64,000 nucleotides of DNA, from the sequence record NC_048053.1; one strand, 5' to 3'. A program made the position numbers and the translations under genes. Below, in pieces: positions 506 to 63,158 of this stretch. Within the stretch, counting starts at the first letter, position 1; each line of letters begins with the position of its first letter. The notes under the pieces are model-generated. The model was not told the origin of the DNA, made no database searches, and saw only the letters and a list, made by a program, of their open reading frames with translations.

Positions 506-770
506 TCTCGACAAAGAAGACCAGTTAACTCCAAATGCGCAGCGTGCCGAAGATCGTGCGAAAGTACGCCGTCGCATCAAAGAGTATGGTGACACTCCTG
601 ATGATGAAATAGATCAGAAGGAGAAAGAGAAGGAAGATCAGGCGGAAGAAAAACGCAAAACTGATAATCCTCCGCCTCCTGAAAATCTCGGTAAATTCAA
701 ACCGGAAACTTACGAAAGTCTGGATCAACAACTTTCCCATATGGACAGACAAACTTCAAAAAATCTGTAA
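489..770 (+). CDS. hypothetical charged protein (start reassigned to ATG 489)
   Basis: In frame with ORF 378..770. MKVEIDLDKEDQ start overlaps the end of the upstream gene. Confidence 0.6.
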   Translation: MKVEIDLDKEDQLTPNAQRAEDRAKVRRRIKEYGDTPDDEIDQKEKEKEDQAEEKRKTDNPPPPENLGKFKPETYESLDQQLSHMDRQTSKNL

Positions 771-773
771 ATA
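763..773 (+). promoter_or_regulatory. CTGTAAATA motif upstream of the sigma-like gene
   Basis: Recurrent motif. Confidence 0.55.
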
Positions 774-805
774 GTGGGTAGGTTCATTTTTCTTTGGGTG
801 CGATA

Positions 806-1843
806 ATGTCGGACAAGTCCAATCTTACGGGCGGTCAGACTGAGGAAGTTTTAGATACTCTGCTTTATGATTCATTACGCGAGATTGTAGAAAATACAGA
901 CTTGTTTGATGTTCAGCTTGTCTATCTCCTTAGTTTGATCACTTCGAATAAAAAACGTAAGCCGTACAATGCTGAAACTCGCGAGCGTGCTATTAGTCTT
1001 GTGATTAAAACTCTGACTACTCCACGCGAAATGCGAATGCAGTATCTGGTTGAAGTGAAGATGGAGCGCAACTTCATCTACATCTTTTTGGAAAATGTTC
1101 TGAACAAGTATTATCGCACCTATGTTGATTTGTATCGCATGTTCATTTCAACAACGGATAGCGATAAGCGTCAGATATATGCAAAACGTTTGGATGTGAT
1201 TGTTCGTGCTACTGGTGCAAGTTCGCGTTCAAAACTTTTTGTAGCGCTTGTTCGTTTGAATGATATGTTGCCTTTGTTCAAAGACTATTTTCATTCTGTC
1301 GTTGCTGATTTCTATCGCTTGTGTCAAAAACACGCGAAGTTTTATATCGACACGAACAAAGGAAAACAATTTGATAGCAAGGATGTGAATCAAAATTTCC
1401 TCCGCAATGTGTTAATTGCAATAAATAAATACGATAGTGCTAAAGGCGCAATCGTTAGTTATGTTAAGTGGTGGATTCTCAACGCACAAACGTGTAGTAG
1501 TAGCGATCACGAATATGGTATCGCCTACACAATTCCGCAAACGCAGAAGAAACGTTTGGCAACGAAAGAAGACACTACTTCCGTGAATTTTTCTGTCAGT
1601 CTTGATACTCCGACGAATGAAACTTCTGATGAGGGGATGGACGCATCCCTTCACAATAAAATGGGCAGCGAAAACCTTGAAGATTCAGTTAACGGAACGA
1701 GACAGGCAGAGAAACTTGGCCTGTTGGTGAAACGTGTTGATCCATTCGGAATCGCTCGCCTGACTATGGATATTCGGGAAGCATTCGAAAAGGAAGAATT
1801 GGATTTCATGCAAGCCTACATGCGCCGACAAGACTTGTCGTAA
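806..1843 (+). CDS. phage RNA polymerase sigma-factor-like protein
   Basis: AINKYDSAKGAIVSYVKWWILNA resembles sigma70 region 2.3-2.4 (KFD..RG..FSTYA.WWI.QA). SLDTP resembles region 3.2. No clear region-4 HTH. ATG 806 preferred over TTG 794. Confidence 0.65.
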   Translation: MSDKSNLTGGQTEEVLDTLLYDSLREIVENTDLFDVQLVYLLSLITSNKKRKPYNAETRERAISLVIKTLTTPREMRMQYLVEVKMERNFIYIFLENVLNKYYRTYVDLYRMFISTTDSDKRQIYAKRLDVIVRATGASSRSKLFVALVRLNDMLPLFKDYFHSVVADFYRLCQKHAKFYIDTNKGKQFDSKDVNQNFLRNVLIAINKYDSAKGAIVSYVKWWILNAQTCSSSDHEYGIAYTIPQTQKKRLATKEDTTSVNFSVSLDTPTNETSDEGMDASLHNKMGSENLEDSVNGTRQAEKLGLLVKRVDPFGIARLTMDIREAFEKEELDFMQAYMRRQDLS

Positions 1844-1854
1844 AACTAACACGA

Positions 1855-1865
1855 ATCTGTAAACG
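1855..1865 (+). promoter_or_regulatory. CTGTAAA motif upstream of the SSB-uvsX operon
   Basis: Intergenic AATCTGTAAAC. Confidence 0.55.
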
Positions 1866-1903
1866 TTAAGTATACCGATTCAACTCAATATTGAGGATTA
1901 AAC

Positions 1904-3088
<1,185 letters not shown>

Positions 3089-3102
3089 GTAGGTAATCCC
3101 AT

Positions 3103-3129
3103 AGGGCGGCATTAGTCGCCCTTTCTTTT
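3103..3129 (+). terminator. intrinsic terminator/attenuator between SSB and uvsX
   Basis: AGGGCGGC-ATTA-GTCGCCCT followed by a T-rich tail. Confidence 0.65.
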
Positions 3130-3142
3130 CAGGAATCCAGTA

Positions 3143-4648
3143 ATGGCTAAAACCAAAACTAAAGAGAAGGTTGCAAAGAAATCAAAAGCCGTTGAAGGTG
3201 GAGATCTCGTTGTAGCCAAAGCGAAGAAATCAGTTGTCGAAGCGCTTGAGCCGAAAGCGTTTGGCATTGATATGAACGCATATCTTGACAGCATCATTGA
3301 AGTTGTTGAGAAGAAAACGAAAATCAGTTCTCAGAACATGATGCGTTATGCGACTCGTATCTCAACTGGTATTCTCGCGCTCGATATGTATCTGGACGGC
3401 GGTATTGTTCCGGGCGGCTGGTACACATTTGCAGGCGGCGAACAAAGTTGTAAATCAACTCTCGCTATGTGTATCGCGGCAGCACTGATCAAACAAAACT
3501 TCCGTGGCACCACAAGTTATTTCGACTATGAAGGTTCGGCAGATGAACAGTATGCTGCAAACCAGTTGAAAACTCTCGGTGTTAAAATCGATCCGAAAGA
3601 AATCTTTGGCGTTAAAGATGATGAAACTGGCGAATGGCTGGTTCGTCCTCGTATCCGTTATTATGCGCCGGACAACGGAGAGAAATTCTTCGATTACATG
3701 TCTGGTATTCGCCGCCGTCTCCCGGATAAGATCGTAGAGAAAAACGGTGAAGCATTCTTTATTTTCGAAAACACGAAAGAAAATAAAAAGCTCGTCGGCA
3801 ATAACTACGATAAAAAATGGTTCAGCTCACACAACCAATTCAAAGTTCCTGCTCCTGACGCGCACATGCAAAGCCTTACGCTTGTCGATTCTTATCCTGC
3901 TATGATGCCGGATCAAGTTGATGATGACGAAGGCAGTAAAGCGATGGCGTTGCAGGCGCGTATGTTCTCGGACGGAATCAAACGTTTCCGTGGCGGTATG
4001 CGTCGTAAGATGATGACCGTTGTTGGCATTAACCAATTGCGTCAAAAACCTGCGACGATGTTTGGCAGTCCTGAATATGAACCGTGTGGCGATGCACTGA
4101 AATTTTATTCTGACGTTCGTTTGCGTATGGCGAGCCGTGCTGTTCCGCAAGGTTGGCCTCAGTTGAAAGATGCGCCGGGTATTGTTGGTGAGGATAGCGT
4201 GACAGTAGAAGGCGGCATTGACCGTTATCGCTTCATTGCAATTCGCACAACGAAAAACAAAATGGGCGGCATTCCAAACCAAACAACGTGGGTTCGTTTG
4301 TGGGAGTCCGATGGCAACGGTGAAGCGCGTGGTTTCGATCCTGTGTTCGATACGTGGCATTACATGAAAACTATCGGCCTGATCAATGGAACTCGCAACC
4401 GCATCAAGTTCAATGATCCGTGTCCTCTCGCAAGCAAAGTTGCAATCGACTGGCAGGAATTCCGTACTCTGATCAATGGTAACAAAGAACAGATTACGAA
4501 AATCTGCAAGAAGATGGGCGTTAAGCCTAACTCTCTGCGTGCGTGGTGTTTCAAATTCATCACAACTCCGAAAGGAAAAGATTTGCTGCGTAAGAGTATT
4601 ATTGCAAAAGGCAAATCATCTTCTGACGATGATGGTGATGATGAGTAA
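3143..4648 (+). CDS. uvsX: RecA/UvsX-like recombinase
   Basis: ISTGILALDMYLDGG, Walker A variant GGEQSCKST, Walker B LTLVDS, ALQARMFS, INQLRQK..MFGSPEYEPCGDALKFYSDVRL. Confidence 0.9.
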   Translation: MAKTKTKEKVAKKSKAVEGGDLVVAKAKKSVVEALEPKAFGIDMNAYLDSIIEVVEKKTKISSQNMMRYATRISTGILALDMYLDGGIVPGGWYTFAGGEQSCKSTLAMCIAAALIKQNFRGTTSYFDYEGSADEQYAANQLKTLGVKIDPKEIFGVKDDETGEWLVRPRIRYYAPDNGEKFFDYMSGIRRRLPDKIVEKNGEAFFIFENTKENKKLVGNNYDKKWFSSHNQFKVPAPDAHMQSLTLVDSYPAMMPDQVDDDEGSKAMALQARMFSDGIKRFRGGMRRKMMTVVGINQLRQKPATMFGSPEYEPCGDALKFYSDVRLRMASRAVPQGWPQLKDAPGIVGEDSVTVEGGIDRYRFIAIRTTKNKMGGIPNQTTWVRLWESDGNGEARGFDPVFDTWHYMKTIGLINGTRNRIKFNDPCPLASKVAIDWQEFRTLINGNKEQITKICKKMGVKPNSLRAWCFKFITTPKGKDLLRKSIIAKGKSSSDDDGDDE

Positions 4649-4654
4649 TTCTTT

Positions 4655-4678
4655 GGCGGGGAAACCCGCCTTAGTTTC
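4655..4678 (+). terminator. hairpin after uvsX
   Basis: GGCGGG-GAAA-CCCGCC with a weak T tail. Confidence 0.55.
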
Positions 4679-4689
4679 AGGAGAAAGTA

Positions 4690-5091
4690 ATGTCTGATTT
4701 TCTTCCATCCGATATTCGTCCCGGAACGATGTTTGATAATCCGGTAGAATATGTTCCGGAACTTTCGCTCGCTCTTTTCAATCGCCTGTTGGTCGAAGTC
4801 AAAAAGAACTCAGTAACAAACAATCGCTTTGCATTTATGGTTGGCGATGCACTGCGGGAAAGTTTTGATGACTGTCGCCGTGGCGCAAGTGAAATGCGGT
4901 TATCGTTGTATTTTGATCCGTACATGAAAGAACTTCCCAAAGAATATTTGGGTGTCATTCTCGGTACTCCAATTTTCGCGAACTCTGGTTTAAATCCGTA
5001 TGCGCTTATTGCTGTAAGTTTCGCTGAATCTCGCGACGGCAAATATGATGCACAATATCAGACTGGTGTTGATCTCACACCAAATCTGTAA
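4690..5091 (+). CDS. hypothetical protein
   Basis: ORF with AGGAG Shine-Dalgarno. Confidence 0.7.
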   Translation: MSDFLPSDIRPGTMFDNPVEYVPELSLALFNRLLVEVKKNSVTNNRFAFMVGDALRESFDDCRRGASEMRLSLYFDPYMKELPKEYLGVILGTPIFANSGLNPYALIAVSFAESRDGKYDAQYQTGVDLTPNL

Positions 5092-5144
5092 ATAGGTATT
5101 GAAGAATTGCTGTGTGTAGTCTTGCTCTCATAAAGAGCATTTTC

Positions 5145-5171
5145 GGGGCGCTTCGGTGCCCCATTTTTTTT
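5145..5171 (+). terminator. intrinsic terminator
   Basis: GGGGCGC-TTCG-GTGCCCC followed by a poly-T run. Confidence 0.8.
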
Positions 5172-5208
5172 AACTCTCGATAGCCCAATGCGGGCAGGAG
5201 AAAATCAA

Positions 5209-7080: not shown

Positions 7081-7160
7081 AAACTTAGCCCACTAACGAT
7101 TTCCTCCATAATTTATTTTGGTAGCATAGATTTGTTACTACAATAATAAGAGGACACGTT

Positions 7161-7474: not shown

Positions 7475-9292
7475 ATGTCTACTATTTCTTTGTCGCAGAA
7501 GAGTCAAGAGATTGCCTCTCTGTCGGCATCTGTTGCGCAAAAGGAAGCTGCAAAGTTTCTTTTTGGCAAAAACTATTTGAAGATCCTTGAGACAATCGAG
7601 AAACTTGCGAAGTCGAAAGTGGTTGTATCGCCTCAATTGCGTGGTCTGCTTCTGATGATGCGCGATGCGGAAGACGCAGAGATCATTAAGTTTCAGAAAT
7701 CCGTGCCGGGTAAAGCAACAATCAAAGCCGCGCAGGATCTGCTTAAAGCAAAAACTCTGGATGCAAGTTTGAAAGCATTTCGAGGGATTAAGGTTGCGAA
7801 GAAATGGACGCAAGAGGCAAGCCAAACAAAAGACGTGACGAAGCCCGTTCCGAAAGTTAAACCTGCTCGCCAGCCTAAACCTGCGCCGGAAGAAAAACCT
7901 GTTCTGAAAGTTGGTGAACAAGTTAAGTCTGCACCGAAAATTGGAACGCCTCAAATTCCCGATCTCACCAATAAACCAAATCCGGATACCAAATTCGGCA
8001 AACTGGTTAATGACACCGTTCGCGTTATCGTGAATGCTGCATACCTGATCGATGATTCGATGATCATGCTGACCAAAAACGGCGGCTATCAAATTCGTAT
8101 CTATCCAAAAGTTACTGACAACCCGCGTGAAGATCTCGCTTATGGGATCATTGTTCATAAAGACGAAACTTTCAGTTACGGTGTTTATGACAAAAACGGT
8201 ATCGGTAAAACTGTTGGCAGTGATACCAACATGCGCAAAGCAGTGTCGCATATTATTCACGAAATCGAAACCAACAACCCGACCAATGCTAACGCGTTTC
8301 AGGTTGCTTTCGGCAAAGGCAAAGCAAAAGACGATCATAAATCTGAAACCGTTCTGGTTGATGAAATTTCTGATGTGTTGCCGCAAACTCTGGATAAAAA
8401 GTTTGAGAACTATACCGATCACGTTAAAGCGATTGGCGATAACCTCAAACGAAATATTCCCGGCCTGAAAACTAAATTGCTTCCTCGCGGTCTGGAATTG
8501 ATCATGGGGCAGGATGAATTCGGCACGCTGAAATTCGGTGATGGGCGTTGGTTACTCACGCCATATAAACGCGTACACAAGACGGTTGATATCGGGCAGA
8601 ACTATGACGCAGGCTACGTGATTCAAACACTGAAAGATATGTTTGAGGCTGATCGTAAACGCGCTGCGCGTAAAGAAAAAACTCATGGCGTAACAGATAA
8701 CCTGATGTTGAAATACAAACAGGATATGATGAGCGCACTGGCAAGTAGCGATCTGAAACTGTTCGACGAAGTTCATAACGGAAAAGAAACCAACGACGAT
8801 AATCTTGTTTGGGATATGTCGTATCGTATGCCCGAAACTGGAATCTCGTTGCCCGTTTCTATTCGCTATAATCGCCGTCGTGGTTACAGCTTTGGATTGA
8901 ATGGCGCACCTTACACGATGATTCAACCGGGCGTAGCTCAGAACATTGGTAAGTTTGTTCGCGCTCTCAAATCCACTATTGCCGCTGTTGTGAAAAGTAG
9001 CAGTAAAAAATATGCGCTTGTTGATGGGCGTCCGTTTACTCCGGGAACTGGCGTGCTGCACGCGAAAGCGAAAGCGGTTGATATTCGCTGCACGCAAACA
9101 GCAATTTTCCTTACTGGTAATCCTGCGGCGGTTTCGACTTTGTTCGACGGAAGTTTCAAACAGCCTCTGCTGGATTCTAAAGGCACGGCAACCGTGAACC
9201 GTGCGGCACCGAACAACTATCGCATTCTCTGCAATAATGAGGAAGTGCGTGATCAAATCCTGATGGGTGCAAACATCATCCGGAAACTGTAA
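7475..9292 (+). CDS. large hypothetical protein with Lys/Pro-rich linker
   Basis: 605 aa ORF with GAGG Shine-Dalgarno, flanked by terminators. Confidence 0.75.
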   Translation: MSTISLSQKSQEIASLSASVAQKEAAKFLFGKNYLKILETIEKLAKSKVVVSPQLRGLLLMMRDAEDAEIIKFQKSVPGKATIKAAQDLLKAKTLDASLKAFRGIKVAKKWTQEASQTKDVTKPVPKVKPARQPKPAPEEKPVLKVGEQVKSAPKIGTPQIPDLTNKPNPDTKFGKLVNDTVRVIVNAAYLIDDSMIMLTKNGGYQIRIYPKVTDNPREDLAYGIIVHKDETFSYGVYDKNGIGKTVGSDTNMRKAVSHIIHEIETNNPTNANAFQVAFGKGKAKDDHKSETVLVDEISDVLPQTLDKKFENYTDHVKAIGDNLKRNIPGLKTKLLPRGLELIMGQDEFGTLKFGDGRWLLTPYKRVHKTVDIGQNYDAGYVIQTLKDMFEADRKRAARKEKTHGVTDNLMLKYKQDMMSALASSDLKLFDEVHNGKETNDDNLVWDMSYRMPETGISLPVSIRYNRRRGYSFGLNGAPYTMIQPGVAQNIGKFVRALKSTIAAVVKSSSKKYALVDGRPFTPGTGVLHAKAKAVDIRCTQTAIFLTGNPAAVSTLFDGSFKQPLLDSKGTATVNRAAPNNYRILCNNEEVRDQILMGANIIRKL

Positions 9293-9296
9293 ATAT

Positions 9297-16532: not shown

Positions 16533-16534
16533 AA

Positions 16535-27854: not shown

Positions 27855-28112
27855 ATGGCTGTAGGTTTTACAAAAGATGATGGTGTACACGACACTATCG
27901 AAAGCAACACTCAAAATGAAATTGATTTTGCTCGCGCTCAACTTATGGGCGCTGGAAGCAAACATTGTTTGGAGTGTGGGCAAGAAATTCCAGAAGCACG
28001 CCGCAAAGTAATGCCTAACGCAAAATATTGCGTAGCCCATCAAGCGGAGCATGACGGTTCTTCTTACTCGTATTACAATCGTCGTGGAAGCAAAGATTCT
28101 CAACTGAGGTGA
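27855..28112 (+). CDS. ybiI: DksA/TraR-family C4 zinc-finger protein, YbiI-like
   Basis: CLECGQEIPEARR...YCVAH. The C-terminal YNRRGSKDSQLR matches my recollection of E. coli YbiI. Confidence 0.85.
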   Translation: MAVGFTKDDGVHDTIESNTQNEIDFARAQLMGAGSKHCLECGQEIPEARRKVMPNAKYCVAHQAEHDGSSYSYYNRRGSKDSQLR

Positions 28113-28691: not shown

Positions 28692-29102
28692 ATGGCAGAC
28701 AAGATTATTGTTACAGCCCGCGAACTTAAAATTCTCGGCAGTCAGTACACTATCCTTTTTATGAAGGATGGAATCTATATCGACGTAGAAAAATTCTGGA
28801 AAGAAAACTGCAATATGCGCAGTGATCTTTTCCCGCCGCCTGAATATCAGATTGGCCTTTTAGCTGCTTTCGGTGATGCGATTCAGGAAATTCATATTTG
28901 CCCGCTTGAAAAACTTCACTCCGCTTTGGCATCTATTCCCGGCGGTCATCACGGTTGGCGTGACTACATTTCAAATTCAAAACTTGATCGCATGTTAAAT
29001 ATAGTCGATTCAATTTCCGATCTGGAATGTTTTGGAACAACGGGAACTCTTTATCTGAACTCGGATACAGTCAATAGCGGTTGGGAATACGGATATCTGT
29101 AA
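28692..29102 (+). CDS. hypothetical protein
   Basis: AGGA Shine-Dalgarno. Confidence 0.65.
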   Translation: MADKIIVTARELKILGSQYTILFMKDGIYIDVEKFWKENCNMRSDLFPPPEYQIGLLAAFGDAIQEIHICPLEKLHSALASIPGGHHGWRDYISNSKLDRMLNIVDSISDLECFGTTGTLYLNSDTVNSGWEYGYL

Positions 29103-29105
29103 ATA
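29095..29105 (+). promoter_or_regulatory. CTGTAAATA motif upstream of uvsE
   Basis: Recurrent motif overlapping the upstream stop codon. Confidence 0.5.
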
Positions 29106-35862: not shown

Positions 35863-36150
35863 ATGTACCAATCAACTGGAATTCCAACAAAATTGGAATT
35901 GAATAAAATTTGTCTTGAGGCTCTGACTCTTTATGCGCACGGCCTGATAAGTTTAACTGAACTGTCCGGGCGCTTGAGTGTAGAGGATGTTTCAATCTCG
36001 CATGTGACGACAACATTCACAAGCGAGTGCCTCACTATCTCAACTGGCATTAAACAAACCGATCTCTATTTCCATCTGACTAAATTTTCCGGTGAAAAAG
36101 ACGAGCGCGGTTTTCCTATCAACGACGAAGCATGTGTCGTTAATCTGTAA
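35863..36150 (+). CDS. hypothetical protein
   Basis: ORF in an operon. Confidence 0.55.
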   Translation: MYQSTGIPTKLELNKICLEALTLYAHGLISLTELSGRLSVEDVSISHVTTTFTSECLTISTGIKQTDLYFHLTKFSGEKDERGFPINDEACVVNL

Positions 36151-36204
36151 ACAAAATATAGGCGTGGCATGTGCTGCGCCTTTCTACGTTATGGGGAATT
36201 ATTT

Positions 36205-42578: not shown

Positions 42579-42623
42579 GTGCCTGAAATACCGCTGGTAA
42601 CATTTACGCCTTTTCTGTAAACT
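42565..42623 (+). promoter_or_regulatory. box-type promoter (GCAAA 42571, -10 TAAACT 42618)
   Basis: Member of the 10-copy family (TGCCT variant). Confidence 0.75.
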
Positions 42624-46008: not shown

Positions 46009-46065
46009 CTCTGCAAAACAGTGTCCAAAATAGCGATGGAATTTTGGAACACAAATCTGTAAAAT
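46007..46065 (+). promoter_or_regulatory. box-type promoter (GCAAA 46013, -10 TAAAAT 46060)
   Basis: Member of the 10-copy family. Confidence 0.8.
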
Positions 46066-52701: not shown

Positions 52702-55661
52702 TGAATTCCTCTCAAACTTTTGGAACGGCGTCGCACACTGCATCTGTTACCGATCAGAATCTGAATGCAGGTTCTCCGGCAACTAAAAGCACGGTAATTG
52801 TGGTGCTGTGTCCGACTGTAAACGGCAACCAAATTTTCCGTGCGGAAAATAACGGTAATGTTTCTCAAACTGTCGCGCAGGGTAAAGCTCTCAATCGTCT
52901 GACAGATCTTCTGTCGATGGCGGGGGATAACGCTGGTCATGAACTGATGAGCGCTGCCGCTTCTATTGATGAGCGCTGCAAGCTGAAAGACAGTGCTGCG
53001 ATGATTCTCCGCTATACTGTAAATGGTAGTGTAGAGCGTCTCCAGAAAACTCTGTCTGAGGCGTTGTTTAAGGTCGGCGAAAAAGCTGCAAATGATAATA
53101 CTACGTTAGCGTCGTATGCCAGTCGTTTTGGTGTTCATGCAATCGCAGTATCTGCGGAAAGTAATTCTTACGCAGTCGTTACAGCGATTCGTGATCAACT
53201 GGAAGCGTTCGACCGCAACGAAAGCAATTTTGTTGTTGCGCAGAAAGCAAGTGTTGAGCAAATCAATGCTCCGGTTATCGACTGGTCTGCAACTTCCGCA
53301 AATGTTGTTCTGGAAGGTGCTGCGTTAAGTTTTGTAGTTCGCTCGGAAAAAACCCGCGTGAATTTCCTGATTAATCCTATTAAGGGGAATAATGTTGTGA
53401 GTAACGATCAGAAAGCTCTGTCTGTTTTCAGCCGCGAGAATCAGGCTTCCGTAACTATGGAAGAAAAAGTCGCTGCACTTGAAGCACTCGGTTACGATCT
53501 CGGCGCTATGCCGGATGAAGAGATCGCGCTGTCTTATGATAGCGAGCGTGTTGATTTTCTGGAAGGCGCAGGTGTTGAAGTGAATTCCAGCGACGAAGGC
53601 GAAACTGACGACGCCGAAGAAGGTGAAGAAGAATCCGAAGAAGGTGAAGAGGAAGAGGAAGAAGAAGACGAAGAAGAATTCTCCGCTTCTGAAACTCTGG
53701 CAGAAATTCTGACTAACGCCCAACTGGATCGCGCTCAACTGAAAAAGCTGGTGTTCCTCGCAGGTGGTAAAGTGTTTACCACTGACACCGAAGAAAGTCT
53801 GACGGTGAAACTGCTGGAACTGGTCGAAGAAAAAGACTACAGCGAATTCTTCCAGTTTGCGCTGGACGCTAACGAACGTCTCGGCGGCGTTGATGGCTTT
53901 GCTGACTTCCTGCACGCGGAAAGCGTTCTGGCTACCGACGAAGATGAGGACGACGAAGGCGAAGAAGGCGAAGAAGGCGAAGACGAGGATGATTCTGATG
54001 AAGATGATTCCGAAGACGAAGACGAAGATGATTCTGGCGAAGACGAAGGTGAAGACGAAGATGATTCCGAAGAAGATCTTTCTTTCAACGCTGTGGTAGA
54101 ATTCATCGAACTTATCGGCGGCGATCTGAATCGCGAAGTAATTCGCGCAATTGCTCGCTCCGAAAGTTTCGGCCTGAAAACTTACAAGAACGAAGACGCT
54201 GCTGCGATTTTCGAACGTGTAGTTGAAGTGCTGAACAACAACGAAATCTCTCCGGAAGATTTCGAACAACTGATTCACGATCTGGCGCAGATTGAAGTTG
54301 TTGCCGATGCGTATCCGGAATGGGCTGAGTACGAAGTCAATCCGACGGACTACACTGAACTGTTTGCCTACGAAGGCGGTTCTCTGACTCACGAACAGCG
54401 CGTTGCAGCGCTGGAAGCTGCCGGAAACGATCTCGAAGGTATGGGCATGGTTGCCGTGCTGAAACTTTTCGAAGACTATCGCCGTGAAAATGGTTACGGT
54501 CAGGAAAGTGAAGAAGCCGAAGACGAAACCTATGCGCTGGATTCCGGTGAAGGTGAAACCGACGACGAAGGCGAAGAAGCTGGCGACGAAGAATCCGAAG
54601 AGTCGGAAGAAGAATCTGAGGAAGAAGAATCCGAAGACGAAAACGACGAAGCGTTTGTTTCTGAATCTTCTGAAAACGATCTCGGTACTTTCCTGCGTGT
54701 GCGTCAGGAACAAATGCTGTTGGTCAACTTCGCGCTGACTGATCGCAGTACCTTCGAAGATCTCGCCGAAGAACTTCGCGACCAGAACGGTGTTGATTAT
54801 CGTGTACCAATCAACATGAACGACGAAGCAGAAGGTTCTATGTACCTGCCGCTGACTGTCGCGAGCGATTTGCTGTCCGGTTCCGCTGCGCTTCCGTTTA
54901 TGTCTGATCGCAAAACTTTCAACGTAGAAGATTACGCTGAAAAAATGGCTAACACTATGCGCGGTCAAATCTCGGCGCTGCTGTATGAAGGCCGTCTGGA
55001 AGCTGGACAAGATCCGTATACTAGCGGTTTAGTCCTCGGTGATTTCGTCGAAGATGAAGACGAAGATCTGAATGAGGATGAACTGAGTTCGGAATATCTG
55101 AGCGAACTGGTTGGCGATCATATTCCGATGGCTTCTCTGTATAACGCACATGTTGGCGTGCGTCCGGTTGTTGTCGATACCGAAAGCACTGTTTTGAACA
55201 CTATCGTTCTTAACATTGCAATGCCTTGCATTTGGGGCATCGGCAAGAAGAAAGTAAAAGATCTGGTAATCAGCACTTACAATCGTGTGCTTGCGCACAT
55301 CGGCGAAACTGATATTAAAGTCTATGTCGGTTTCACCCTGAATGCTGGTTCTCTGGTTTCTGATGAAAACCTGCAATCGGTTGTTCGCTCTGTCGGCGAA
55401 ATGGCGAGTGAAGAAATCGCTGTTCACTCCTTCACTACCAACGATGTTCAACGCATCGAAGAAAGTGAAGATCTGGTTGAAGCTGCGCATTCTGTCGGCA
55501 CTGAAAATCTGCCGCTGGCGCTGTTGTCCTCCGGTATCGCTGACGCTGCATTTGCGAACGGCGGTGATCTGATTGTTATCCTGTCTCCTGTTGGTGACAG
55601 TGACGACGAAGATGATTCTGACTCTGATGAAGATGAAGATGAAGACGAGTCCGAAGAGTAA
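52701..55661 (+). CDS. very large acidic protein with repeated helical modules and D/E tracts
   Basis: 986 aa. Repeats EEKVAALEALGYDL / EQRVAALEAAGNDL, plus HeH-like LDRAQLKKLV and LNREVIRAIA segments. Confidence 0.8.
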   Translation: MNSSQTFGTASHTASVTDQNLNAGSPATKSTVIVVLCPTVNGNQIFRAENNGNVSQTVAQGKALNRLTDLLSMAGDNAGHELMSAAASIDERCKLKDSAAMILRYTVNGSVERLQKTLSEALFKVGEKAANDNTTLASYASRFGVHAIAVSAESNSYAVVTAIRDQLEAFDRNESNFVVAQKASVEQINAPVIDWSATSANVVLEGAALSFVVRSEKTRVNFLINPIKGNNVVSNDQKALSVFSRENQASVTMEEKVAALEALGYDLGAMPDEEIALSYDSERVDFLEGAGVEVNSSDEGETDDAEEGEEESEEGEEEEEEEDEEEFSASETLAEILTNAQLDRAQLKKLVFLAGGKVFTTDTEESLTVKLLELVEEKDYSEFFQFALDANERLGGVDGFADFLHAESVLATDEDEDDEGEEGEEGEDEDDSDEDDSEDEDEDDSGEDEGEDEDDSEEDLSFNAVVEFIELIGGDLNREVIRAIARSESFGLKTYKNEDAAAIFERVVEVLNNNEISPEDFEQLIHDLAQIEVVADAYPEWAEYEVNPTDYTELFAYEGGSLTHEQRVAALEAAGNDLEGMGMVAVLKLFEDYRRENGYGQESEEAEDETYALDSGEGETDDEGEEAGDEESEESEEESEEEESEDENDEAFVSESSENDLGTFLRVRQEQMLLVNFALTDRSTFEDLAEELRDQNGVDYRVPINMNDEAEGSMYLPLTVASDLLSGSAALPFMSDRKTFNVEDYAEKMANTMRGQISALLYEGRLEAGQDPYTSGLVLGDFVEDEDEDLNEDELSSEYLSELVGDHIPMASLYNAHVGVRPVVVDTESTVLNTIVLNIAMPCIWGIGKKKVKDLVISTYNRVLAHIGETDIKVYVGFTLNAGSLVSDENLQSVVRSVGEMASEEIAVHSFTTNDVQRIEESEDLVEAAHSVGTENLPLALLSSGIADAAFANGGDLIVILSPVGDSDDEDDSDSDEDEDEDESEE

Positions 55662-55671
55662 TCTGTAAATA
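55661..55671 (+). promoter_or_regulatory. CTGTAAATA motif upstream of the coiled-coil gene
   Basis: Intergenic, immediately after a stop codon. Confidence 0.55.
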
Positions 55672-55716
55672 AATGGTGTAGGGCGAAATGCCTTGCACCA
55701 TTTTTAAGGATTCCCA

Positions 55717-56469
55717 ATGTCTGATACGCAACTTGAAGTTTTACATCGGACACTATTTTCAACGCGTCAGTCACTTGATGATAATATCATGGCACGTCGC
55801 GCAACCGAAAAGGTGTTGGATGAGCGCCTGAGTGAATTAGGCCGTTGTCAGGTTCAACTGAGTATTGCTCAAGAGCGAATTCTGAATCTCCAGACTGAAT
55901 ATAATAATGTTGTGGAGAATTCGGAAATCAAAGCGAAGGCTATGGAAGAAACTTTCCGTACCTCCGAAGCAAAACTGAAAGAAGAAATAGTAATTCTGAA
56001 CGACAAGATTTCGGAACTGCGTGCGCTCTGCCGTGATATGCCGGAAACTCCTGCGGAACATTTGCTGGAAAACGTACTGCATAAAACTATGGCGCATCTG
56101 CATTCAACTGTGGTCTATTTCGCTGCCCTCACGTTGAATTCCAATCCGCAATCTCTGGCTGGTAAAGAGTTGCTCGCGCTGACGAAAAAGCAAACGCTGA
56201 ATCCGGGCAAATTGTTTTCTCTATCTGTAAAGGAAAAGCAGATAGTTCTCGAAAACATTCGTTCGTTTGTGCAAGCAGAACTTGATAATTCTGAATACAC
56301 AAACATCCGTGCGGTAATTAATGCAATGACCGCCTCGGACAAATCGTGGAAGACGTTTCGCGATTGCCTGAAAAATTCTAAGGTGCTTTATTCCCTCGCA
56401 TCTGACAAACTGGAGTTTGACTCTGCGGTAAACGCGGTCGTTGAATTCATTCTTGAACAATTGAAGTAA
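55717..56469 (+). CDS. coiled-coil protein
   Basis: Heptad-rich N-terminal half. AAGGA Shine-Dalgarno. Confidence 0.7.
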   Translation: MSDTQLEVLHRTLFSTRQSLDDNIMARRATEKVLDERLSELGRCQVQLSIAQERILNLQTEYNNVVENSEIKAKAMEETFRTSEAKLKEEIVILNDKISELRALCRDMPETPAEHLLENVLHKTMAHLHSTVVYFAALTLNSNPQSLAGKELLALTKKQTLNPGKLFSLSVKEKQIVLENIRSFVQAELDNSEYTNIRAVINAMTASDKSWKTFRDCLKNSKVLYSLASDKLEFDSAVNAVVEFILEQLK

Positions 56470-56491
56470 TGAACTGGAGTTCGAAATAATC

Positions 56492-57067
56492 ATGGCTAAA
56501 TCCAAGTCCACCTCACTGGTTCCGAAACGTATTGACCGCATCACGAAAAAAGCTGGCGCGATTGCGCAGGTCAAATCTAAACAAACTGATCTGGCTCACG
56601 ATATCGAAATCTCGACTCGTGGCGCACACGAAGTTTCAGGTTTCGTAATCGAAACTACTGCTGACGGTAGCGTAACCATTCGCCACAAAAAAGGCGCTGG
56701 TAGCTCCAAACAGATCGTAAGCACGTTCACCAAAAACCAAATCATTAGCTTTATCGGTGAAGCTGGTGAAATGGGTCAACTGCTGGTTGACGCATACATG
56801 GTTGTTCAGGTGATTCGCGGTCAAACTGTAAAAGTTAAAGACGATGTGATTGTTGCAACTGATATTCAGACTGGCGAAGTCACTCGCATTGCAACCAACA
56901 TTCCGGGCTACGACGTTCGTGCAATTGTTGACGAGGCTGTTGCTTCTAAAAAGTACGGCACTCCGGTTGCATCCGAAAAGAAAAAAGGCGCTAAGGCAGA
57001 AAAAATTGCCAAAGGCGGCAAAGATAAGTCCGGTAAAAAGAAAAAGAAGTCTGACGAAAACTTCTAA
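56492..57067 (+). CDS. basic beta-rich protein with Lys-rich tail (possible nucleic-acid binder)
   Basis: GGAG Shine-Dalgarno, strongly biased codon usage, K-rich C-terminus. Confidence 0.7.
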   Translation: MAKSKSTSLVPKRIDRITKKAGAIAQVKSKQTDLAHDIEISTRGAHEVSGFVIETTADGSVTIRHKKGAGSSKQIVSTFTKNQIISFIGEAGEMGQLLVDAYMVVQVIRGQTVKVKDDVIVATDIQTGEVTRIATNIPGYDVRAIVDEAVASKKYGTPVASEKKKGAKAEKIAKGGKDKSGKKKKKSDENF

Positions 57068-57083
57068 TTCGGTTCCGGCCTGA

Positions 57084-57220
57084 ATCTGTAAAGTAACGTT
57101 GAAGGACAGAATCTGTAAATCAATTCTGTCAGACAGAAACTGTAAACAGTGAATGTCAAACGCCACTGATTAATTTCGGTGGCGTCAGTTAAAAACATTT
57201 TTCTCTTAATCTGTAAATAG
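57084..57220 (+). promoter_or_regulatory. array of four CTGTAAA motifs (57086, 57113, 57140, 57211)
   Basis: First three are spaced exactly 27 bp apart. Confidence 0.65.
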
Positions 57221-57272
57221 TAATTGAACAAAGCGTTCATTACTGAACTTTCCTAAAAGGATAAAATGAATC

Positions 57273-58073
57273 ATGGCTAAAGCAAAGAAAACCTCTAACG
57301 TGGCAATGGAAACTCTGGCTAAAATGGCTGGCCTGCTGGTTGAAGCGGCTGCCGATGCAGAAGTTGCAGAACTTCTCTCCGAAGCTGGTCTGACTGTTGC
57401 CGCTAAAGGTAAAGGCAAAGCTAAAGCTAAAGCTGAACCGAAAGCAAAAGGCGGCAAGAAAAAGAAAGTGACTGCCGCACAAATCGTTGAAGCCATCGAA
57501 GATGGTGAGTCCATCGAACTCGAAGGCACTGACGAAAAAGTTCTGCGCGAGGCCGTGGTCAAAGCAAAACTGACCAGTAAGAAAAAAGCGGAGAGCCTCG
57601 ATGAAGAGGAACTGCTGGAACTGATTCAGGAAGCGTTTGGTTCGTCTGACGAAGATGAAGACGACGAAGACGAGGATGATTCTTATGAAGATGATTCCGA
57701 TGATGAAGACGGCGACGACGAAGACGACGAGGATGATGAAGACTCGGACGACGACGAAGACGGCGACGACGAAGACGACGAAGACGGCGACGACGAAGAC
57801 GACGAAGACGACGACGAAGACGACGAAGATGATGAGGACGACGAAGACGAGGACGAAGATGAAGATCGTGATCTGGAAGACCTCGACGAAGACGAACTCC
57901 GCGCGTTAGCCATCGAAGAAGGCGTGTTCACCAAAGCGCAGGCCAAAAAGAAAGATGAAGATGCACTCCGCGAAGCACTGGAAGCGCACTTCGCTGGTGA
58001 CGACGATGAAGACGAAGACGAAGACGACGAAGACTTCGACGACGAAGACGAAGACGACGAAGACGACGAGTAA
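57273..58073 (+). CDS. extremely acidic protein with two HeH-like modules (nucleoplasmin/chaperone-like composition)
   Basis: DEKVLREAVVKAKLTSKKKAESLDEEELLELIQ and DEDELRALAIEEGVFTKAQAKKKDEDALREALE, separated by ~65 D/E-rich residues. Confidence 0.75.
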   Translation: MAKAKKTSNVAMETLAKMAGLLVEAAADAEVAELLSEAGLTVAAKGKGKAKAKAEPKAKGGKKKKVTAAQIVEAIEDGESIELEGTDEKVLREAVVKAKLTSKKKAESLDEEELLELIQEAFGSSDEDEDDEDEDDSYEDDSDDEDGDDEDDEDDEDSDDDEDGDDEDDEDGDDEDDEDDDEDDEDDEDDEDEDEDEDRDLEDLDEDELRALAIEEGVFTKAQAKKKDEDALREALEAHFAGDDDEDEDEDDEDFDDEDEDDEDDE

Positions 58074-58244
58074 TTAATCATCGACGGCACGCCCCGCTAA
58101 GTTAAATGACGAGCGCGGGGCAAAAAATCTTCAAAGATTTTTGAAGAAAATTTTGTAGAAGTATGTTGAACATGCTAATGTACTTCTACGCAGAAAACGA
58201 ATTTCTGTTTTTCTCCACAACGAATTTTTATACTGAGGTATATC

Positions 58245-58766
58245 ATGACTAAGAAAGTTATTTCCGGCCTGAACAAACAAATCAAATCCATCGAAAAATC
58301 CGATGCCGCTCTGGTGAAGACCATCGAAGGTTTGCAGAAACAGCGTGAAAATCTGGCGTCTACCAAAGACGGTCTGAACGAACAGGTTGCTGCGCTGTCG
58401 GGCGAAGCTGCTCCGGTTAAAGGTAAAGCTAAGGCTGAACCGAAAGCTGCTAAAGGTAAAGCTAAAGCTGAACCGAAAGCTGCTAAAGGCAAAAAAGCTG
58501 CCGAAGAAAAACCGGCTAAAGTGAAAAAAGAAAAAGCCGCTAAAACTGAAAAGCCTGCTAAGGCTGACAAGAAAGCTGCGAAAGGCGAAGGCAAAAAAGC
58601 CAAAGCTGAAAAGCCTGCCAAAGCTGATAAGAAAGCTGCGAAAGGCGAAGGCAAAAAAGCCAAAGCTGAAAAGCCTGCTAAGGGCAAAAAAGTGAAAGGC
58701 GAAAAAGCCAGCAAGAAAAAAGGCAAAAACGCCGACGCAGGTTTTGAATTCGAACTGGACGATTAA
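58245..58766 (+). CDS. histone H1-like Lys/Ala-rich repeat protein (AlgP/Hc2-like composition)
   Basis: N-terminal coiled coil, then KGKAKAEPKAA x2 and EKPAKADKKAAKGEGKKAKA x2, ending in a short acidic tail FEFELDD. Confidence 0.7.
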   Translation: MTKKVISGLNKQIKSIEKSDAALVKTIEGLQKQRENLASTKDGLNEQVAALSGEAAPVKGKAKAEPKAAKGKAKAEPKAAKGKKAAEEKPAKVKKEKAAKTEKPAKADKKAAKGEGKKAKAEKPAKADKKAAKGEGKKAKAEKPAKGKKVKGEKASKKKGKNADAGFEFELDD

Positions 58767-58792
58767 TAGTTCCCTGCGCTGATTAAGTTGAT

Positions 58793-58826
58793 ACGGGTTA
58801 GGGATTTCTCCCTAGCCCGTTTTTCG
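58793..58826 (+). terminator. intrinsic terminator after the H1-like gene
   Basis: ACGGGTTAGGGA-TTTC-TCCCTAGCCCGT-TTTT. Confidence 0.85.
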
Positions 58827-58858
58827 TTTCTGACCGATTTTTCTCGATAGGTTTCTAA

Positions 58859-59200
58859 ATGGATCTTCACTCACGTTTCAAAAAACTTAACGATGATTTG
58901 CTCGAACTTCAAAATGCTGTTCATCGCGTAGTTCGTATCTCTCCAACAAAATTCGCCGTTTGTTTTTATGATCGTCATGAGCAATCGCTGCGAACCAACG
59001 TTATTGACTCTCGTTCAGCACACGAAATAAAACTCATTCAAGAAATGTCCGGTGCTGAGTTGCAGGCATACGGCAATTTCGTTTCTGCCATTCAGGAATG
59101 GTGTGAAGCTGAATCCCCCGGTGATTTTCCTATCACGTATGACAAAGCAGACTCTGACAGCTACCGCACGCTGATTGATGCTATGACCGTTCGGGAATAG
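58859..59200 (+). CDS. hypothetical protein
   Basis: ORF between a terminator and the topoisomerase promoter. Confidence 0.6.
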   Translation: MDLHSRFKKLNDDLLELQNAVHRVVRISPTKFAVCFYDRHEQSLRTNVIDSRSAHEIKLIQEMSGAELQAYGNFVSAIQEWCEAESPGDFPITYDKADSDSYRTLIDAMTVRE

Positions 59201-59201
59201 C

Positions 59202-59260
59202 AACTCTGCAAATCTGTGTCCAAAACGTCGATAGCTTATCTAATACTTTAGTGCTAGAAT
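59202..59260 (+). promoter_or_regulatory. box-type promoter of the topoisomerase operon (GCAAA 59208, -10 TAGAAT 59255)
   Basis: Member of the 10-copy family. Confidence 0.8.
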
Positions 59261-59319
59261 AGGCGGCGGGGAAGTCCGTATATGTAGACGTGTGAGGGAA
59301 TCACGTTCGGAGAAAAATC

Positions 59320-61395
59320 ATGGCAAAGAAAGCCGAAAAAATAACTGTTCTGAAAAAGAAACCTGTTTCTAAAGCAGTAGCGAAAGAAGTTAAGAGCAAG
59401 AAGAATGCTCAAGACGGATTCACCGCGCTTTCTGCTATGGAAGGGTTGCGTAAAAACGCTGGCATGTATCTCGGCGAACCGGGCGAGGACATGGCGTATC
59501 GTAGCGTTAAAGAAGTTGTAGATAACGCATACGATGAAGCAGTAGCAGGACGAAATAAATTAATCGAAGTCATCTTCAATGAAGACAAAGATATTTATAT
59601 CGTCGCTGATGGCGCTGGCGGTATTCCAACAACGCTGAAAAAACTTTATGACGGTACAACCGAAGCGATCATGACTTCCGCATTTACGCGTGTTCACGCT
59701 GGCGGTAAATTTGATAATGACGCATACAAAACTTCTGCGGGTACTCACGGTGTAGGTGTTACTGCCGTTAACGCCGTATCCGAAAGAATTCGTGTGTGGT
59801 CAAACTTCGATAAGAAAACAAAAGGCATGGAATATTCCAAAGGTGAGTGCGTAACTGCAATCAAGAATTGGGAAGTCGATGCCGATGTAATGAAGCTGCT
59901 ACAAGATCCGGCGAAGAAATACGGAACGATTGTTGCGTGGACACTTGATCAAACTGTTGTGAGTGTTGATGCGCGTCGTGGTAAGAAACTGCCGAAGGAT
60001 TACACTCACGCAAAACTTAATGTTGAGCGCACGCGTAATTGGCTGCAAGCAATGTCGGATCTTAATCCGGGATTGGAAATTCGCTTCACGCATATCAAAG
60101 ATAAAAAAGGTAAGCGTCAAGTTTTCCTGAATAAGAAAACTATGGGCGACGTTATCAAACGTATCGCCGAAGAACGCGAATTAGAACTGGACGGAAAGCC
60201 GTTTGAGTTGAAAACTGATTTCGTTAGTCTCGCGATCAGTTGGGCTGACTATCCGGATTCTGATCTTCTGCAAACGTTCGTCAACACATCGCCGACTATT
60301 GATCACGGTTGGCACGTAACAGGATTCCGTAGCGCACTGGAAGCCGCGCTTAAACCTTTCCTGCCTACACCGAAGAAAGGAAGCAAAGCAAAACCAAAAT
60401 CATTTACCGCCAGCGATTTGTTAGTTGGCGCGATTGGTATGTTCGACTGGCGAATGCACGGCGCACAATATACTTCGCAGGTGAAAGATAAACTTGCAAG
60501 TCGTGTTGAAAAAGAAGTTCAAGCGATTGTTGAAAAGCCGTTGACTGAATTCTTTGCTAAGAATAAATCTCTTGCGAAGAAAATCATTAAACGCGCAGAA
60601 GCAATGATGAAAGGTCGTGATGAATTGAGCGCTGTTATTCGTTCAATGGCAGACACGAAGAAGAAAGTTGCAGGTAACTCGCTTCCTTCTTTCCTCGAAG
60701 CTGCGCCTCGCTGTAAACCGTTTGAGCGTGAATTAGTTGTGGTGGAAGGTGATTCCGCTGGCGGTACTGGTAAGAACGCTCGCGATCCTTTCTATCAAGA
60801 AATCATGAAAGCAGGCGGTAAACCTCTTAACGGTTTGAAAGCTCCGCTGGCAAAAGTTCTTGTGCATAAACAGGTGCAAGGTTTGTTGGTGAGTATCGGC
60901 GCGGATTTAAAAACGCTCGATCCAAAAGCAGAAGCGCCAACGTTGAGCACGGAAAAATTGCGTATCGGCAATCTGTTGTTCCTCGCAGATGCTGACCCGG
61001 ATGGCAGTCACATTAACACGCTGTTCCTTGCTGTTATTTATCGACTGTTGCCGGATATGATGCGCGAAGGCCGTGTGTGGGTTGTTGATGCTCCGCTATA
61101 TAATGTGATGTACAAAGGCAAACACTATGGCGGCATGACGTTTGAAGAATGTCGTGCGATTGCACCTAGCGCGGTAAAAGATAGTGAGATCGTTCGTGCA
61201 AAAGGTTGGGGTGAAGTTAACCCTGATGTTCTGCGTGCGATTGCTTTCGATCCGGAAACGCGCCGACTCATTCGAATCAATCCGTTTGAGAATGCAGAGC
61301 AAGAACGTTTCTTCCGTGGTGTTGTTGCGGAGGATGCGATCTATCGCCGCCGTCTGTTAGGTCTGGTTGAAGTAAATGCAGGGGATGATGAATAA
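59320..61395 (+). CDS. gyrB: type IIA DNA topoisomerase, GyrB/ParE-like subunit
   Basis: [47 protein letters not shown], Toprim VEGDSA and [14 protein letters not shown]. Confidence 0.93.
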
Positions 61396-63077
61396 TGGCA
61401 ACCATTAAGCCGAAGAAAAACGCGAAGCCAGAAAAAACGAAAGTTAAACCTGCTGCGAAATCGAAAGCCGTTGCGAAAAAATCAAAAGGCATTGAAGTTG
61501 CTGATATCAAGACGGGCAAAAAACTCAAGAAGAAAACTAATACTGCAATCAGCACTGTAGTAGAAAGTAAGTATCCGCTCAAAGGACAGAAGCAAGAAAA
61601 CATTCGCGATGAAGGTTTGGCTGCTTTTACTGAGCGTGAGTTGCGTAAGTACGGATCTTACGTTGTTGAAGATCGTGCCATTCCAGATTTTCGCGATGGG
61701 TTGAAACCTGTTCACCGTGCGATCATTTGGGCAATGTCAGATCTCAACCTGTTACCTTCTGGTGGGTATAAAAAGAGTGCGCGTGTTGTTGGTGATGCTC
61801 TCGGTAAATATCATCCTCATGGTGATAGCGCGTGTTATGGCGCAATGGTTACGGTCGCTAACACCGTGCCTCCTGCGGTAGACGGTCAGGGCAATTGGGG
61901 TACACCAACTGATCCGTTCGCTGCGATGCGTTATACCGAAGCAAAACAAAGTCGTTTCACGCAAATGTTTTTGCTGGATAAAAACTATTTGCAAGTTACA
62001 CCGATGGTAAGCAACTTCTCAAACGATATGAAGTTGCCGCTGCATCTTCCTGCGCTGCTGCCTTTCATGCTGTTTGCTGGCACCGTTCCCGCTCCGGCCT
62101 ATGGTGTGAAGTGTGGGAACCCAACGTTCACTTTTGCTAGTGTTGCGCGTGTTGTGATTGATATGCTTAACGGTGTTGAATACGATCACAAAAAACTCGC
62201 GAAGACGTTAGTTATTCAGCATGAGTTTGGTTGTAAAAATATTACTTCCAGTAGCGAAATGTTGAACCTGATGCGAACCGGGCGCGGCAAAGTAACATAC
62301 GAACCGGAAATGAAAATCGATCTGAAACGCAAAACGATTGTGATTCAGACTTTCGTTCCGCTCGGTTTCGCGTCGGAAGATGGCATTGAAAAAATGCTGA
62401 TGAAGTTCTCAACCATTCAGGGCGTATCAACTGCGCATTCTGTTGGCGGTGAGCGAAACCCGGACGCGGGAACTTATGGTTGTGCTGTTGAAGTTGTTGC
62501 TGCGCGTGGCGTCGATGAAGATCGATTCTACGAAATCGCGCAAGAAGTTCAAAAGCTAGTTACCAAATCTGTTTCGTATATTCTCGGTGTTACTGTTCGT
62601 CACGGCGACAAGCCGAACAGCTTTAAGTATCTCGATTATCTCTCATACTTCAAAGCATGGGTGACGTATCGCAAGAAACTTGAAGTGCGTATGCTGGATT
62701 GGTTGATAGCGCGTGCGCAAAAAGAACTTCACTTACAGGAGGTTTATTTATTCGCGGTAGAGAACAAAGACAAGTTGCTTAAAGCACTGCCTAAAGTTCT
62801 GTCCTCGAAGACTCCAGATGAAGCTCTTGCAAAAGCAATCAAACTCCCGGTTGAAGATGCAAAAATAATTTTGGATCGTCAAGTGCGTAAGTTGGCAACA
62901 CTTGAAAAAGCCGATCTGGTTGCGAAGATTAAAGCGTTGAAAGCAGATATCGCAGGCTGGCAGAAAGGGCTGAAAGCTCCGGGCAAGTATGCAGCGAAAG
63001 ACACCGAAGATCGTGTTGTTCGTTACTTGAAAAATCCGGATGCTAATAAGCCTAAACTCGGCTACGGAAAACTGTAA
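61395..63077 (+). CDS. gyrA: type IIA DNA topoisomerase, GyrA/ParC-like subunit lacking the C-terminal beta-pinwheel
   Basis: [46 protein letters not shown] (catalytic Tyr). Confidence 0.93.
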
Positions 63078-63158
63078 ATACTAATTGGGATCTGTAGACT
63101 AGGAATATTCCTAATACTGTAAATAATAGTAATTAGGAACTGTAAACAGATCCCTTTT
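63070..63158 (+). promoter_or_regulatory. CTGTA(A/G)A array with nested inverted repeats
   Basis: Copies at 63072, 63092, 63117, 63140. GGGATCTGT...ACAGATCCC inverted repeat. Confidence 0.6.

Follow-up and report, generated by a model that had tools for sequence, protein, structure and literature searches.

Most jumbo phages do not have their own RNA polymerase, and they are assumed to reprogramme the host enzyme through their own sigma factors. The phage sigmas gp36 of phiEco32 and gp28 and gp33/34 of SPO1 redirect the host core polymerase to a short phage-specific word. T4 late promoters are recognised by gp55 together with gp33 and the sliding clamp gp45, and MotA/AsiA re-target the host sigma70 holoenzyme at the middle promoters. 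A middle-gene product that switches on the late genes is the usual cascade in T4 and SPO1. The genome of the Pseudomonas phage Lu11 was reportedly described by Adriaenssens et al. 2012, J Virol 86:6369. Its GenBank record (JQ768459.1) labels 16-mers such as CTGTAAATACATAGTA as 'putative middle/late promoter', beside sigma70-like 'early' promoters, and this label is a prediction in a database record. For jumbo phages in general, a 2026 review states only that their sigma factors 'likely' act at phage-specific promoters (PMC13282480). Here we describe a repeated box, CTGTAAA(T/C)A, in a 64,000-nucleotide (nt) window of the jumbo phage vB_DsoM_JA29, which is very probably a promoter by its sequence context.

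The window is the whole stretch of DNA analysed and is identical in sequence to bases 186001-250000 of the Dickeya phage vB_DsoM_JA29 genome (NC_048053.1, 253,323 bp, genus Salmondvirus; hereafter JA29). The + strand genes extend from 175.8 kb through the origin to 41.5 kb, many of them small and others for replication; virion, lysis and further replication functions are encoded on the - strand between 41.5 and 175.6 kb. Every annotated gene in the window is on the + strand, and intergenic DNA makes up 5.2% of the genome. No RNA polymerase genes are present in JA29, and gp222 is annotated as 'RNA polymerase sigma factor'. The survey of the box and the sigma gene covered ten genomes: JA29, JA11, pEa_SNUABM_32 (Erwinia), NCTB, HRDY3 and Lu11 (both Pseudomonas), PaBG, GR7B (Vibrio), PhiXhv-12 (Xanthomonas) and Voja-6 (P. 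putida).

The window contains 11 copies of the exact form CTGTAAAYA (Y is T or C), every one on the + strand, and shuffled sequences gave a mean of 0.70 and never 11. The original prediction had listed 14 copies of this form. Eleven of them are indeed exact, and the copies at 1857 (CTGTAAACG), 57086 (CTGTAAAGT) and 57113 (CTGTAAATC) carry only the heptamer CTGTAAA and deviate at positions 8-9. Two intergenic heptamer copies, at 42615 (CTGTAAACT) and 46057 (CTGTAAAAT), were absent from that list. Its division of the listed copies into six that double as the Leu-CTG codon and TAA stop of the upstream gene, and eight that are purely intergenic, agrees with the annotation (Table 1). Of the 24 exact copies in the whole genome, 12 were intergenic, 8 overlapped a stop codon, 3 were coding-sense and 1 was antisense; 20 of the 24 lay in or bordered intergenic DNA. 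The 12 pure intergenic sense copies compare with 0.1-0.5 expected under Markov models of orders 1-3 trained on intergenic DNA, and no antisense copy was found there. With Shine-Dalgarno and terminator words set aside, CTGTAAA was the top enriched intergenic heptamer. Likely chance copies, antisense at genome position 47485 and intragenic at 87079, had no counterpart in JA11.

Genes ending in CTG-TAA numbered 12 against 4.4 expected (P = 0.002). In nine of these 12 ends A[TC] comes next, and in eight AA[AT] comes directly before; the excess therefore reflects copies of the motif and not codon usage. The intergenic enrichment thus passed the CTG-TAA codon control that had been proposed as its check. 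Genes end within the box because the A/T-rich word supplies TAA in one frame and the genes are tightly packed. The T of the AAW flank (W is A or T) gives TAA in a second frame, as TAA-T-CTGTAAATA at window position 55663 and at three further genomic sites. The repeated CTGTAAATA box is confirmed as real and non-random.

JA29 and JA11 are ~91% identical, and the heptamer was intact at 32 of 33 alignable sites, with flanks of +/-40 nt differing at 174 of 2505 positions (6.9%); the box at 29097 is outside this alignment. At 55663, 12 of 12 box bases were identical and the flanks differed at 23 of 79 positions, and all four boxes before gp309 were identical in JA11. In ten of ten genomes the box was enriched 9-27 fold upstream of genes with strong strand bias (9-25 sense against 0-4 antisense copies), and a sigma homologue was present in all ten, with identity as low as 23-26%. 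Orthologous genes kept the box in pEa_SNUABM_32 (odds ratio 21, P = 1.5e-8), Lu11 (odds ratio 145, P = 6e-7) and HRDY3 (P = 9e-4). The conserved regulon included SSB, DNA polymerase I, the polymerase-like gene gp154, primase, clamp loader, a recombination endonuclease, NAD-dependent ligase and thymidylate synthase. In GR7B, PhiXhv-12 and Voja-6 the box preceded DNA polymerase I, primase, clamp loader, SSB, topoisomerase II, exonuclease and ligase. The proposed association with replication genes therefore held (SSB, polymerases, primase, clamp loader, ligase and the operon after topoisomerase II). The downstream JA29 genes that had been called nucleoid genes have no recognisable function.

The site before SSB was compared in 15 loci with a sigma-SSB-RecA block, including six metagenome contigs. 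Eleven of the 15 loci had aaaCTGTAAA(T/C/A) at 35-62 nt ahead of the start codon, and the remaining four had the one-mismatch forms CTGTCAAT, CTGTTAAT (twice) and GTGTAAAG. Outside the box, the SSB spacer was unalignable among the 15 loci. As a separate observation on this block, the RecA beside SSB is enlarged in one metagenome relative (L140) with a LAGLIDADG match, and a gene upstream of sigma in another (L139) has an intein-splicing match, which suggests inteins in the conserved block of these two loci.

Site alignments of JA29, pEa_SNUABM_32, Lu11 and HRDY3 gave the extended form AAW-CTGTAAAT-A. No information indicating a -35 element was present in the 25 bases upstream of the aligned sites in these four genomes. 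Among 305 sites from nine genomes, position 16 of the motif was a purine in 252 (P = 3e-32), with a sharp peak in each genome, and position 15 was a pyrimidine in 198. Lu11 sites showed G14-T15-A16, and in JA29 position 16 was a purine in 31 of 38 sites, with G14 and T15 weakly preferred. Such a pyrimidine-purine (Y-R) step at fixed positions resembles a transcription start. When position 16 is taken as +1, TAAATA occupies -12 to -7 and CTG occupies -15 to -13. In five of five genomes analysed, the next start codon on the same strand lay most often 40-60 nt from the box, so the 5' leaders would be ~25-45 nt long.

Primase is encoded by gp210, which stands alone on the - strand within a block of + strand genes and therefore needs its own promoter. 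Its 65-nt upstream divergent gap contains aatCTGTAAATT 55 nt before the start codon, and on the opposite strand a TAATTT motif serving the neighbouring gene. Short divergent gaps in three other phages were arranged in the same way: 60 nt in Lu11, 67 nt in NCTB and 62 nt in GR7B, where two boxes stand back to back. In the gaps of 60-67 nt the box was the sole conserved element ahead of the gene; the 'none' count of the divergent-gap test is inflated by residual small spurious open reading frames, mostly in HRDY3 and PaBG. Gaps of this size leave no space for a separate upstream promoter, so the box itself would have to be the promoter. The original prediction had offered two possibilities, a phage-sigma promoter or a binding site for a phage regulator. 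All in-silico tests favoured the first (enrichment after the codon control, co-orientation, distance, Y-R step and replication genes), and gp222, a protein of sigma70 fold, is encoded beside the box at 765.

We consider the following explanation as a whole to be the more probable one, with moderate confidence. AAW-CTGTAAAT-A would be the -10-type core of a phage promoter class for replication, recombination and nucleotide-metabolism ('middle') genes, acting without a -35 element. Transcripts would begin 6 nt past the box and carry leaders of the length given above. A phage-encoded sigma, most likely the sigma70-like gp222, would direct the host core RNA polymerase to the box. With tight gene packing, the A/T-rich box would often overlie the end of the upstream gene and supply its TAA stop.

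The candidate reader gp222 had no match in Pfam or NCBIfam, and a single-sequence search of the PDB was marginal. A profile of 43 homologues matched RpoD regions 1.2-2.4 (E = 6e-5). The AlphaFold (AF2) model of gp222 had a mean confidence (pLDDT, predicted local distance difference test) of 81, and its top 50 Foldseek matches were all sigma70/SigA with probability 1.00. The model has an N-terminal helical region and region 2 at about residues 140-235; a disordered linker then leads to a small C-terminal domain of three helices. It took the profile and fold searches to recognise the sigma, and on both matches together gp222 is a sigma70-family protein. That gp222 is the protein which reads the box is a narrower claim, for and against which the case appears evenly balanced.

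The phage has a second motif, (C/G)TAATTT(T/A), located 30-40 nt before tail sheath, endolysin, PAAR, tail-fibre and other late genes and often just past a terminator. It is probably a late promoter class. The motif is conserved in pEa_SNUABM_32, Lu11, HRDY3, NCTB and PaBG; no strand-biased enrichment was seen in GR7B, PhiXhv-12 and Voja-6. Another candidate factor is gp317, whose homologue, PaBG gene 112, was proposed as a possible second sigma (PMC7412058). Residues 148-240 of gp317 superposed on the sigma2 domain of RpoE, an extracytoplasmic function (ECF) sigma, with a VIA-align Z of 9.6 and 1.9 A over 79 residues, and on Vibrio cholerae sigma70 with Z = 5.7; both matches were above all unrelated rows. 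An hhalign comparison of gp317 with the gp222 family was not significant, its profile search of the PDB was empty and Foldseek was not significant. The structural matches are suggestive of a second, very diverged sigma.

Homologues of gp222 and the CTGTAAAT box were found together in ten of ten genomes, and detectable gp317 homologues and strand-biased TAATTT enrichment were found in the same seven genomes only. This distribution, drawn from few independent lineages, favours gp222 reading the box and gp317 reading TAATTT. A full two-sigma cascade for this widespread clade of jumbo phages without RNA polymerase is a tentative extension that we regard as possible but rather doubtful: gp222 would read the TGTAAATA box, the replication regulon including gp317 would be expressed, and gp317 would then act at the TAATTT late promoters, with the terminator nesting of the JA lineage (below) as part of it. 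The clade infects Dickeya, Erwinia, Yersinia, Pseudomonas, Xanthomonas, Vibrio and marine bacteria. The run gp314-gp318, which includes the sigma2-like gp317 just past the window end, is headed by the triple box at 63072-63148, and control of gp317 by this array would make a neat cascade.

In JA29 some boxes are directly followed by a GC hairpin and a T-run, at window positions 9287 and 55663 and at genome positions 14446, 24888 and 30882. By a strict rule this was found at 6 of 38 sites, and the 5' arm started at motif positions 7-12 in four of the six. At 9287 the hairpin and T-run begin 4 nt past the box and the predicted start, 9302, is inside the 5' arm; at 55663 the terminator hairpin directly follows the box and the predicted start, 55678, is again within the 5' arm. 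Transcripts started at such a box would lack the hairpin base beside the U-run and so escape termination, and read-through transcripts from upstream would stop at the same terminator. We infer this bypass from the hairpin positions and for the JA lineage only. If the two-sigma account were true, nested terminators in this lineage would stop read-through and transcription would restart at the same spot. We also considered 'motif + terminator' as a general unit and rejected it, because the relatives pEa_SNUABM_32, Lu11 and HRDY3 have one such site each.

Several points weigh against the explanation given above. The hexamer TAAATA has A at -7, where sigma70-type factors prefer T, and TG abuts the hexamer with no spacer base, unlike the sigma70 extended -10. 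A second sigma2-like protein, gp317, is encoded. The co-occurrence of sigma and box rests on few independent lineages. The sigma gene is itself preceded by a box in JA29 and pEa_SNUABM_32, which fits equally well a cascade in which this sigma reads TAATTT. Terminator nesting is confined to the JA lineage. Finally, the start site, the reading factor, the timing and the terminator bypass are all deduced from sequence.

Some of these points agree with the strongest alternative, in which the box is a promoter that is not read by gp222. Either host sigma70 re-targeted by an early phage protein, or gp317, would read the box, and gp222 would read the late TAATTT motif. The box directly before the sigma gene is what is expected for a middle gene that activates late genes, TAATTT agrees more closely than TAAATA with TAnnnT, the -10 pattern of the sigma70 family, and stands close before tail sheath, endolysin and other late genes, and gp317 has a sigma2-like domain. 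However, strand-biased TAATTT enrichment and detectable gp317 homologues are confined to seven genomes, whereas gp222 homologues and the box are in all ten, and PhiXhv-12 has the box with almost no TAATTT sites. In addition, the box sequence hardly varies among phages of Enterobacterales, Pseudomonas, Xanthomonas and Vibrio, and a box unchanged across such diverse hosts points to a reader carried by the phage. We hold this alternative as a whole to be unlikely, though deserving of attention.

The box could also be an operator for a phage DNA-binding regulator other than sigma, either repressor or activator, and not a promoter core. A short conserved DNA word ahead of a functional gene set, with arrays of three and four copies before gp314 and gp309, would suit an operator. 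But the box lacks dyad symmetry, shows strict strand specificity (the 0-4 antisense against 9-25 sense copies above) and has a Y-R step at a fixed offset, and the divergent gaps of 60-67 nt have no space for a separate promoter upstream of it. These observations make the regulator site, the second possibility of the original prediction, improbable.

A still smaller probability is given to a role in RNA, as an intercistronic cleavage or processing site, an upstream element of terminators or a strong stop-codon context. The box is always on the sense strand, at or just past stop codons, eight genes take their stop from its TAA, and in JA29 a hairpin often follows. However, stop overlap involves just 8 of ~34 JA29 copies, the hairpin association is missing in the relatives, and the distance is constrained to the downstream start and variable to the upstream stop. 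The box also precedes the first genes of divergent units, where there is no upstream transcript, and this disfavours an RNA-processing signal; strand specificity, lack of dyad symmetry and the short divergent gaps together disfavour both operator and RNA signal. Chance, or a by-product of Leu-CTG plus TAA codon usage, has a negligible probability, for although CTGTAAA also occurs 37 times in coding sense, this reading is refuted by the enrichment, the codon control, the JA11 footprint, the orthology and the SSB-site tests.

The coordinates of the boxes, the candidate reader genes and the other motifs are collected in Table 1.

Table 1. Boxes, candidate readers and further motifs of JA29 (window positions unless marked as genome; exact, CTGTAAAYA; heptamer, CTGTAAA only)
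Feature	Position	Strand	Form	Context
Class-B box aatCTGTAAATA	765..773	+	exact	supplies last codon and stop of gp221; box end 32 nt before sigma gene start (806); kept in JA11
gp222, sigma70-family, 345 aa, candidate box reader	806..1843	+		PHROG 17569, profile, fold
Class-B box aatCTGTAAACG	1857..1865	+	heptamer	intergenic; box start 47 nt before SSB gene (1904)
Class-B box	5086..5094	+	exact	supplies Leu-CTG and stop of gp225; upstream of gp226 (5209)
TAATTT copy	7109	+		before gp229
Class-B box	9287..9295	+	exact	supplies Leu-CTG and stop of gp230; upstream of gp231 (9345)
aaCTCTGCAAA motif	14149, 19184, 26883, 34518, 38492, 46013, 47719, 47878, 59208	+		
Class-B box	29097..29105	+	exact	supplies Leu-CTG and stop of gp268; upstream of UvsE-like endonuclease gp269 (29163)
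Class-B box CTGTAAACA	36145..36153	+	exact	supplies Leu-CTG and stop of gp279; upstream of gp280 (36205); hairpin follows
Weaker class-B copy tttCTGTAAACT	42615..42623	+	heptamer	intergenic; upstream of gp292 (42678); kept in JA11
Weaker class-B copy aatCTGTAAAAT	46057..46065	+	heptamer	intergenic; upstream of gp298 (46158)
Class-B box	55663..55671	+	exact	one base past gp306 TAA stop; upstream of gp307 (55717)
Four-box array (57086, 57113, 57140, 57211)	57086..57219	+	57140 and 57211 exact; 57086 and 57113 heptamer	205-nt gap before gp309 (57273)
Three-box array (63072, 63117, 63140)	63072..63148	+	exact	first box supplies Leu-CTG and stop of topoisomerase II gp313
gp317, PaBG gene 112 homologue	genome 251822-252955			just past window end
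TAATTT example	genome 95757	-		tail sheath gp126
TAATTT example	genome 159770	-		endolysin gp184
TAATTT example	genome 76435	-		PAAR gp105

The first three boxes of the array before gp309 are spaced by 27 nt. Over 57086-57148 they form 27-nt direct repeats, acagaaWCTGTAAA, interleaved with a CTGTCAGACAG palindrome; these repeats may be a tandem promoter array or may include an extra regulator site. Three further CTGTAAA boxes, at genome positions 78402, 78296 and 78088, are found in a gene-free region of ~1 kb on the - strand (77407-78409). No Rfam family was detected in this region, and no tRNA was found anywhere in the JA29 genome.

Another repeated element, aaCTCTGCAAA-N4-TGTCCAAAA, had nine copies, all on the + strand, in the larger gaps ahead of small-gene clusters. 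It was absent from pEa_SNUABM_32, Lu11, NCTB and PaBG. This lineage-specific motif may be an early promoter or regulator class, and it may correspond to the first class of the original prediction. Meanwhile, gp265 (window 27855-28112, +) is a DksA/TraR-type zinc-finger protein (Pfam PF01258, E = 6.5e-10) with homologues in pEa_SNUABM_32, HRDY3 and PhiXhv-12. DksA/TraR-type factors bind the secondary channel of RNA polymerase, and gp265 may modulate the host polymerase during infection. At genome 17275-19504, two coding sequences annotated as 'putative thymidylate synthase' flank an endonuclease gene (gp025, gp026 and gp027), and it looks like a thymidylate synthase gene split by a homing-endonuclease element.

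Relatives of window positions 55001-61000, at 90-99% identity, were found in metagenome assemblies from wastewater, soil and freshwater. The only public runs that contain such sequence are metagenome contigs, and those labelled RNA-Seq are probably DNA; their mapped reads showed no accumulation of ends. In the literature searched, which did not include the Lu11 genome paper, there was no published description of the motif, no transcript mapping for this clade and no experiment that tests the Lu11 label. The present analysis makes the idea of sigma reprogramming testable in one large clade, with a box, a start predicted to the single base, a conserved replication regulon and two candidate readers. 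The box offers a simple rule for annotating transcription units in ~80 related phage genomes, some of which belong to biocontrol candidates against Dickeya and Erwinia, and it is useful both for annotation and as an entry point for experiments.

Compared with known systems, the box has the features of a core promoter: it is co-oriented with the genes, lies at a constrained short distance upstream of them, and a sigma gene (gp222) is available. As an accessory element of intrinsic terminators it does not fit, since hairpin and U-run do not constantly accompany it. It resembles the sigma70 extended -10 (TGnTATAAT) in having TG just upstream of an A/T hexamer that begins with TA, and in needing no -35 element. 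The TAnnnT pattern is followed at T-12 and A-11, but 19-29 of 31-40 sites per genome have A at -7 and not the near-invariant T. Together with the abutting TG, this sets the box apart from the textbook forms of both the sigma70 -10 and the extended -10 element. The promoter words of phiEco32 and SPO1 are not known to be related in sequence to the box.

The T4 late promoter word TATAAATA matches the 8-bp JA29 box TGTAAATA at seven of eight positions, with G for A at position 2. Both are -10-only, with a start (predicted in JA29) a few bases downstream, and both would use a phage sigma-family protein on the host core polymerase, for which gp222 is the JA29 candidate. In contrast to T4, the JA29 box has an additional conserved C and AAW flank, and it serves replication, recombination and nucleotide-metabolism genes, with TAATTT on the structural genes. 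The candidate sigma also differs, being a sigma70-like protein of 345 aa with the N-terminal helices and small C-terminal domain described above, and not gp55-sized. It is the only sigma recognised, in an analysis that included no search aimed at gp55, gp33 or gp45.

Five of five inspected 'putative middle/late promoter' features in the Lu11 record coincide with copies of the box. Lu11 and JA29 belong to the same phage group, with homologous sigmas (35% identity) and sigma-SSB-RecA synteny. Their boxes share the core CTGTAAAT and an A-rich 5' flank, and stand before homologous genes, SSB among them. They differ in that the Lu11 16-mer ends in a clear GTA, where JA29 keeps only the purine at position 16, and in that the JA29 box is often fused with a stop codon and terminator. 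The finding is unsurprising in kind: -10-only promoters specific to a phage have long been known, and the Lu11 record had flagged this word before. Taken with these systems, the box very probably belongs to an ordinary phage promoter class of the predicted kind, not new but well supported.

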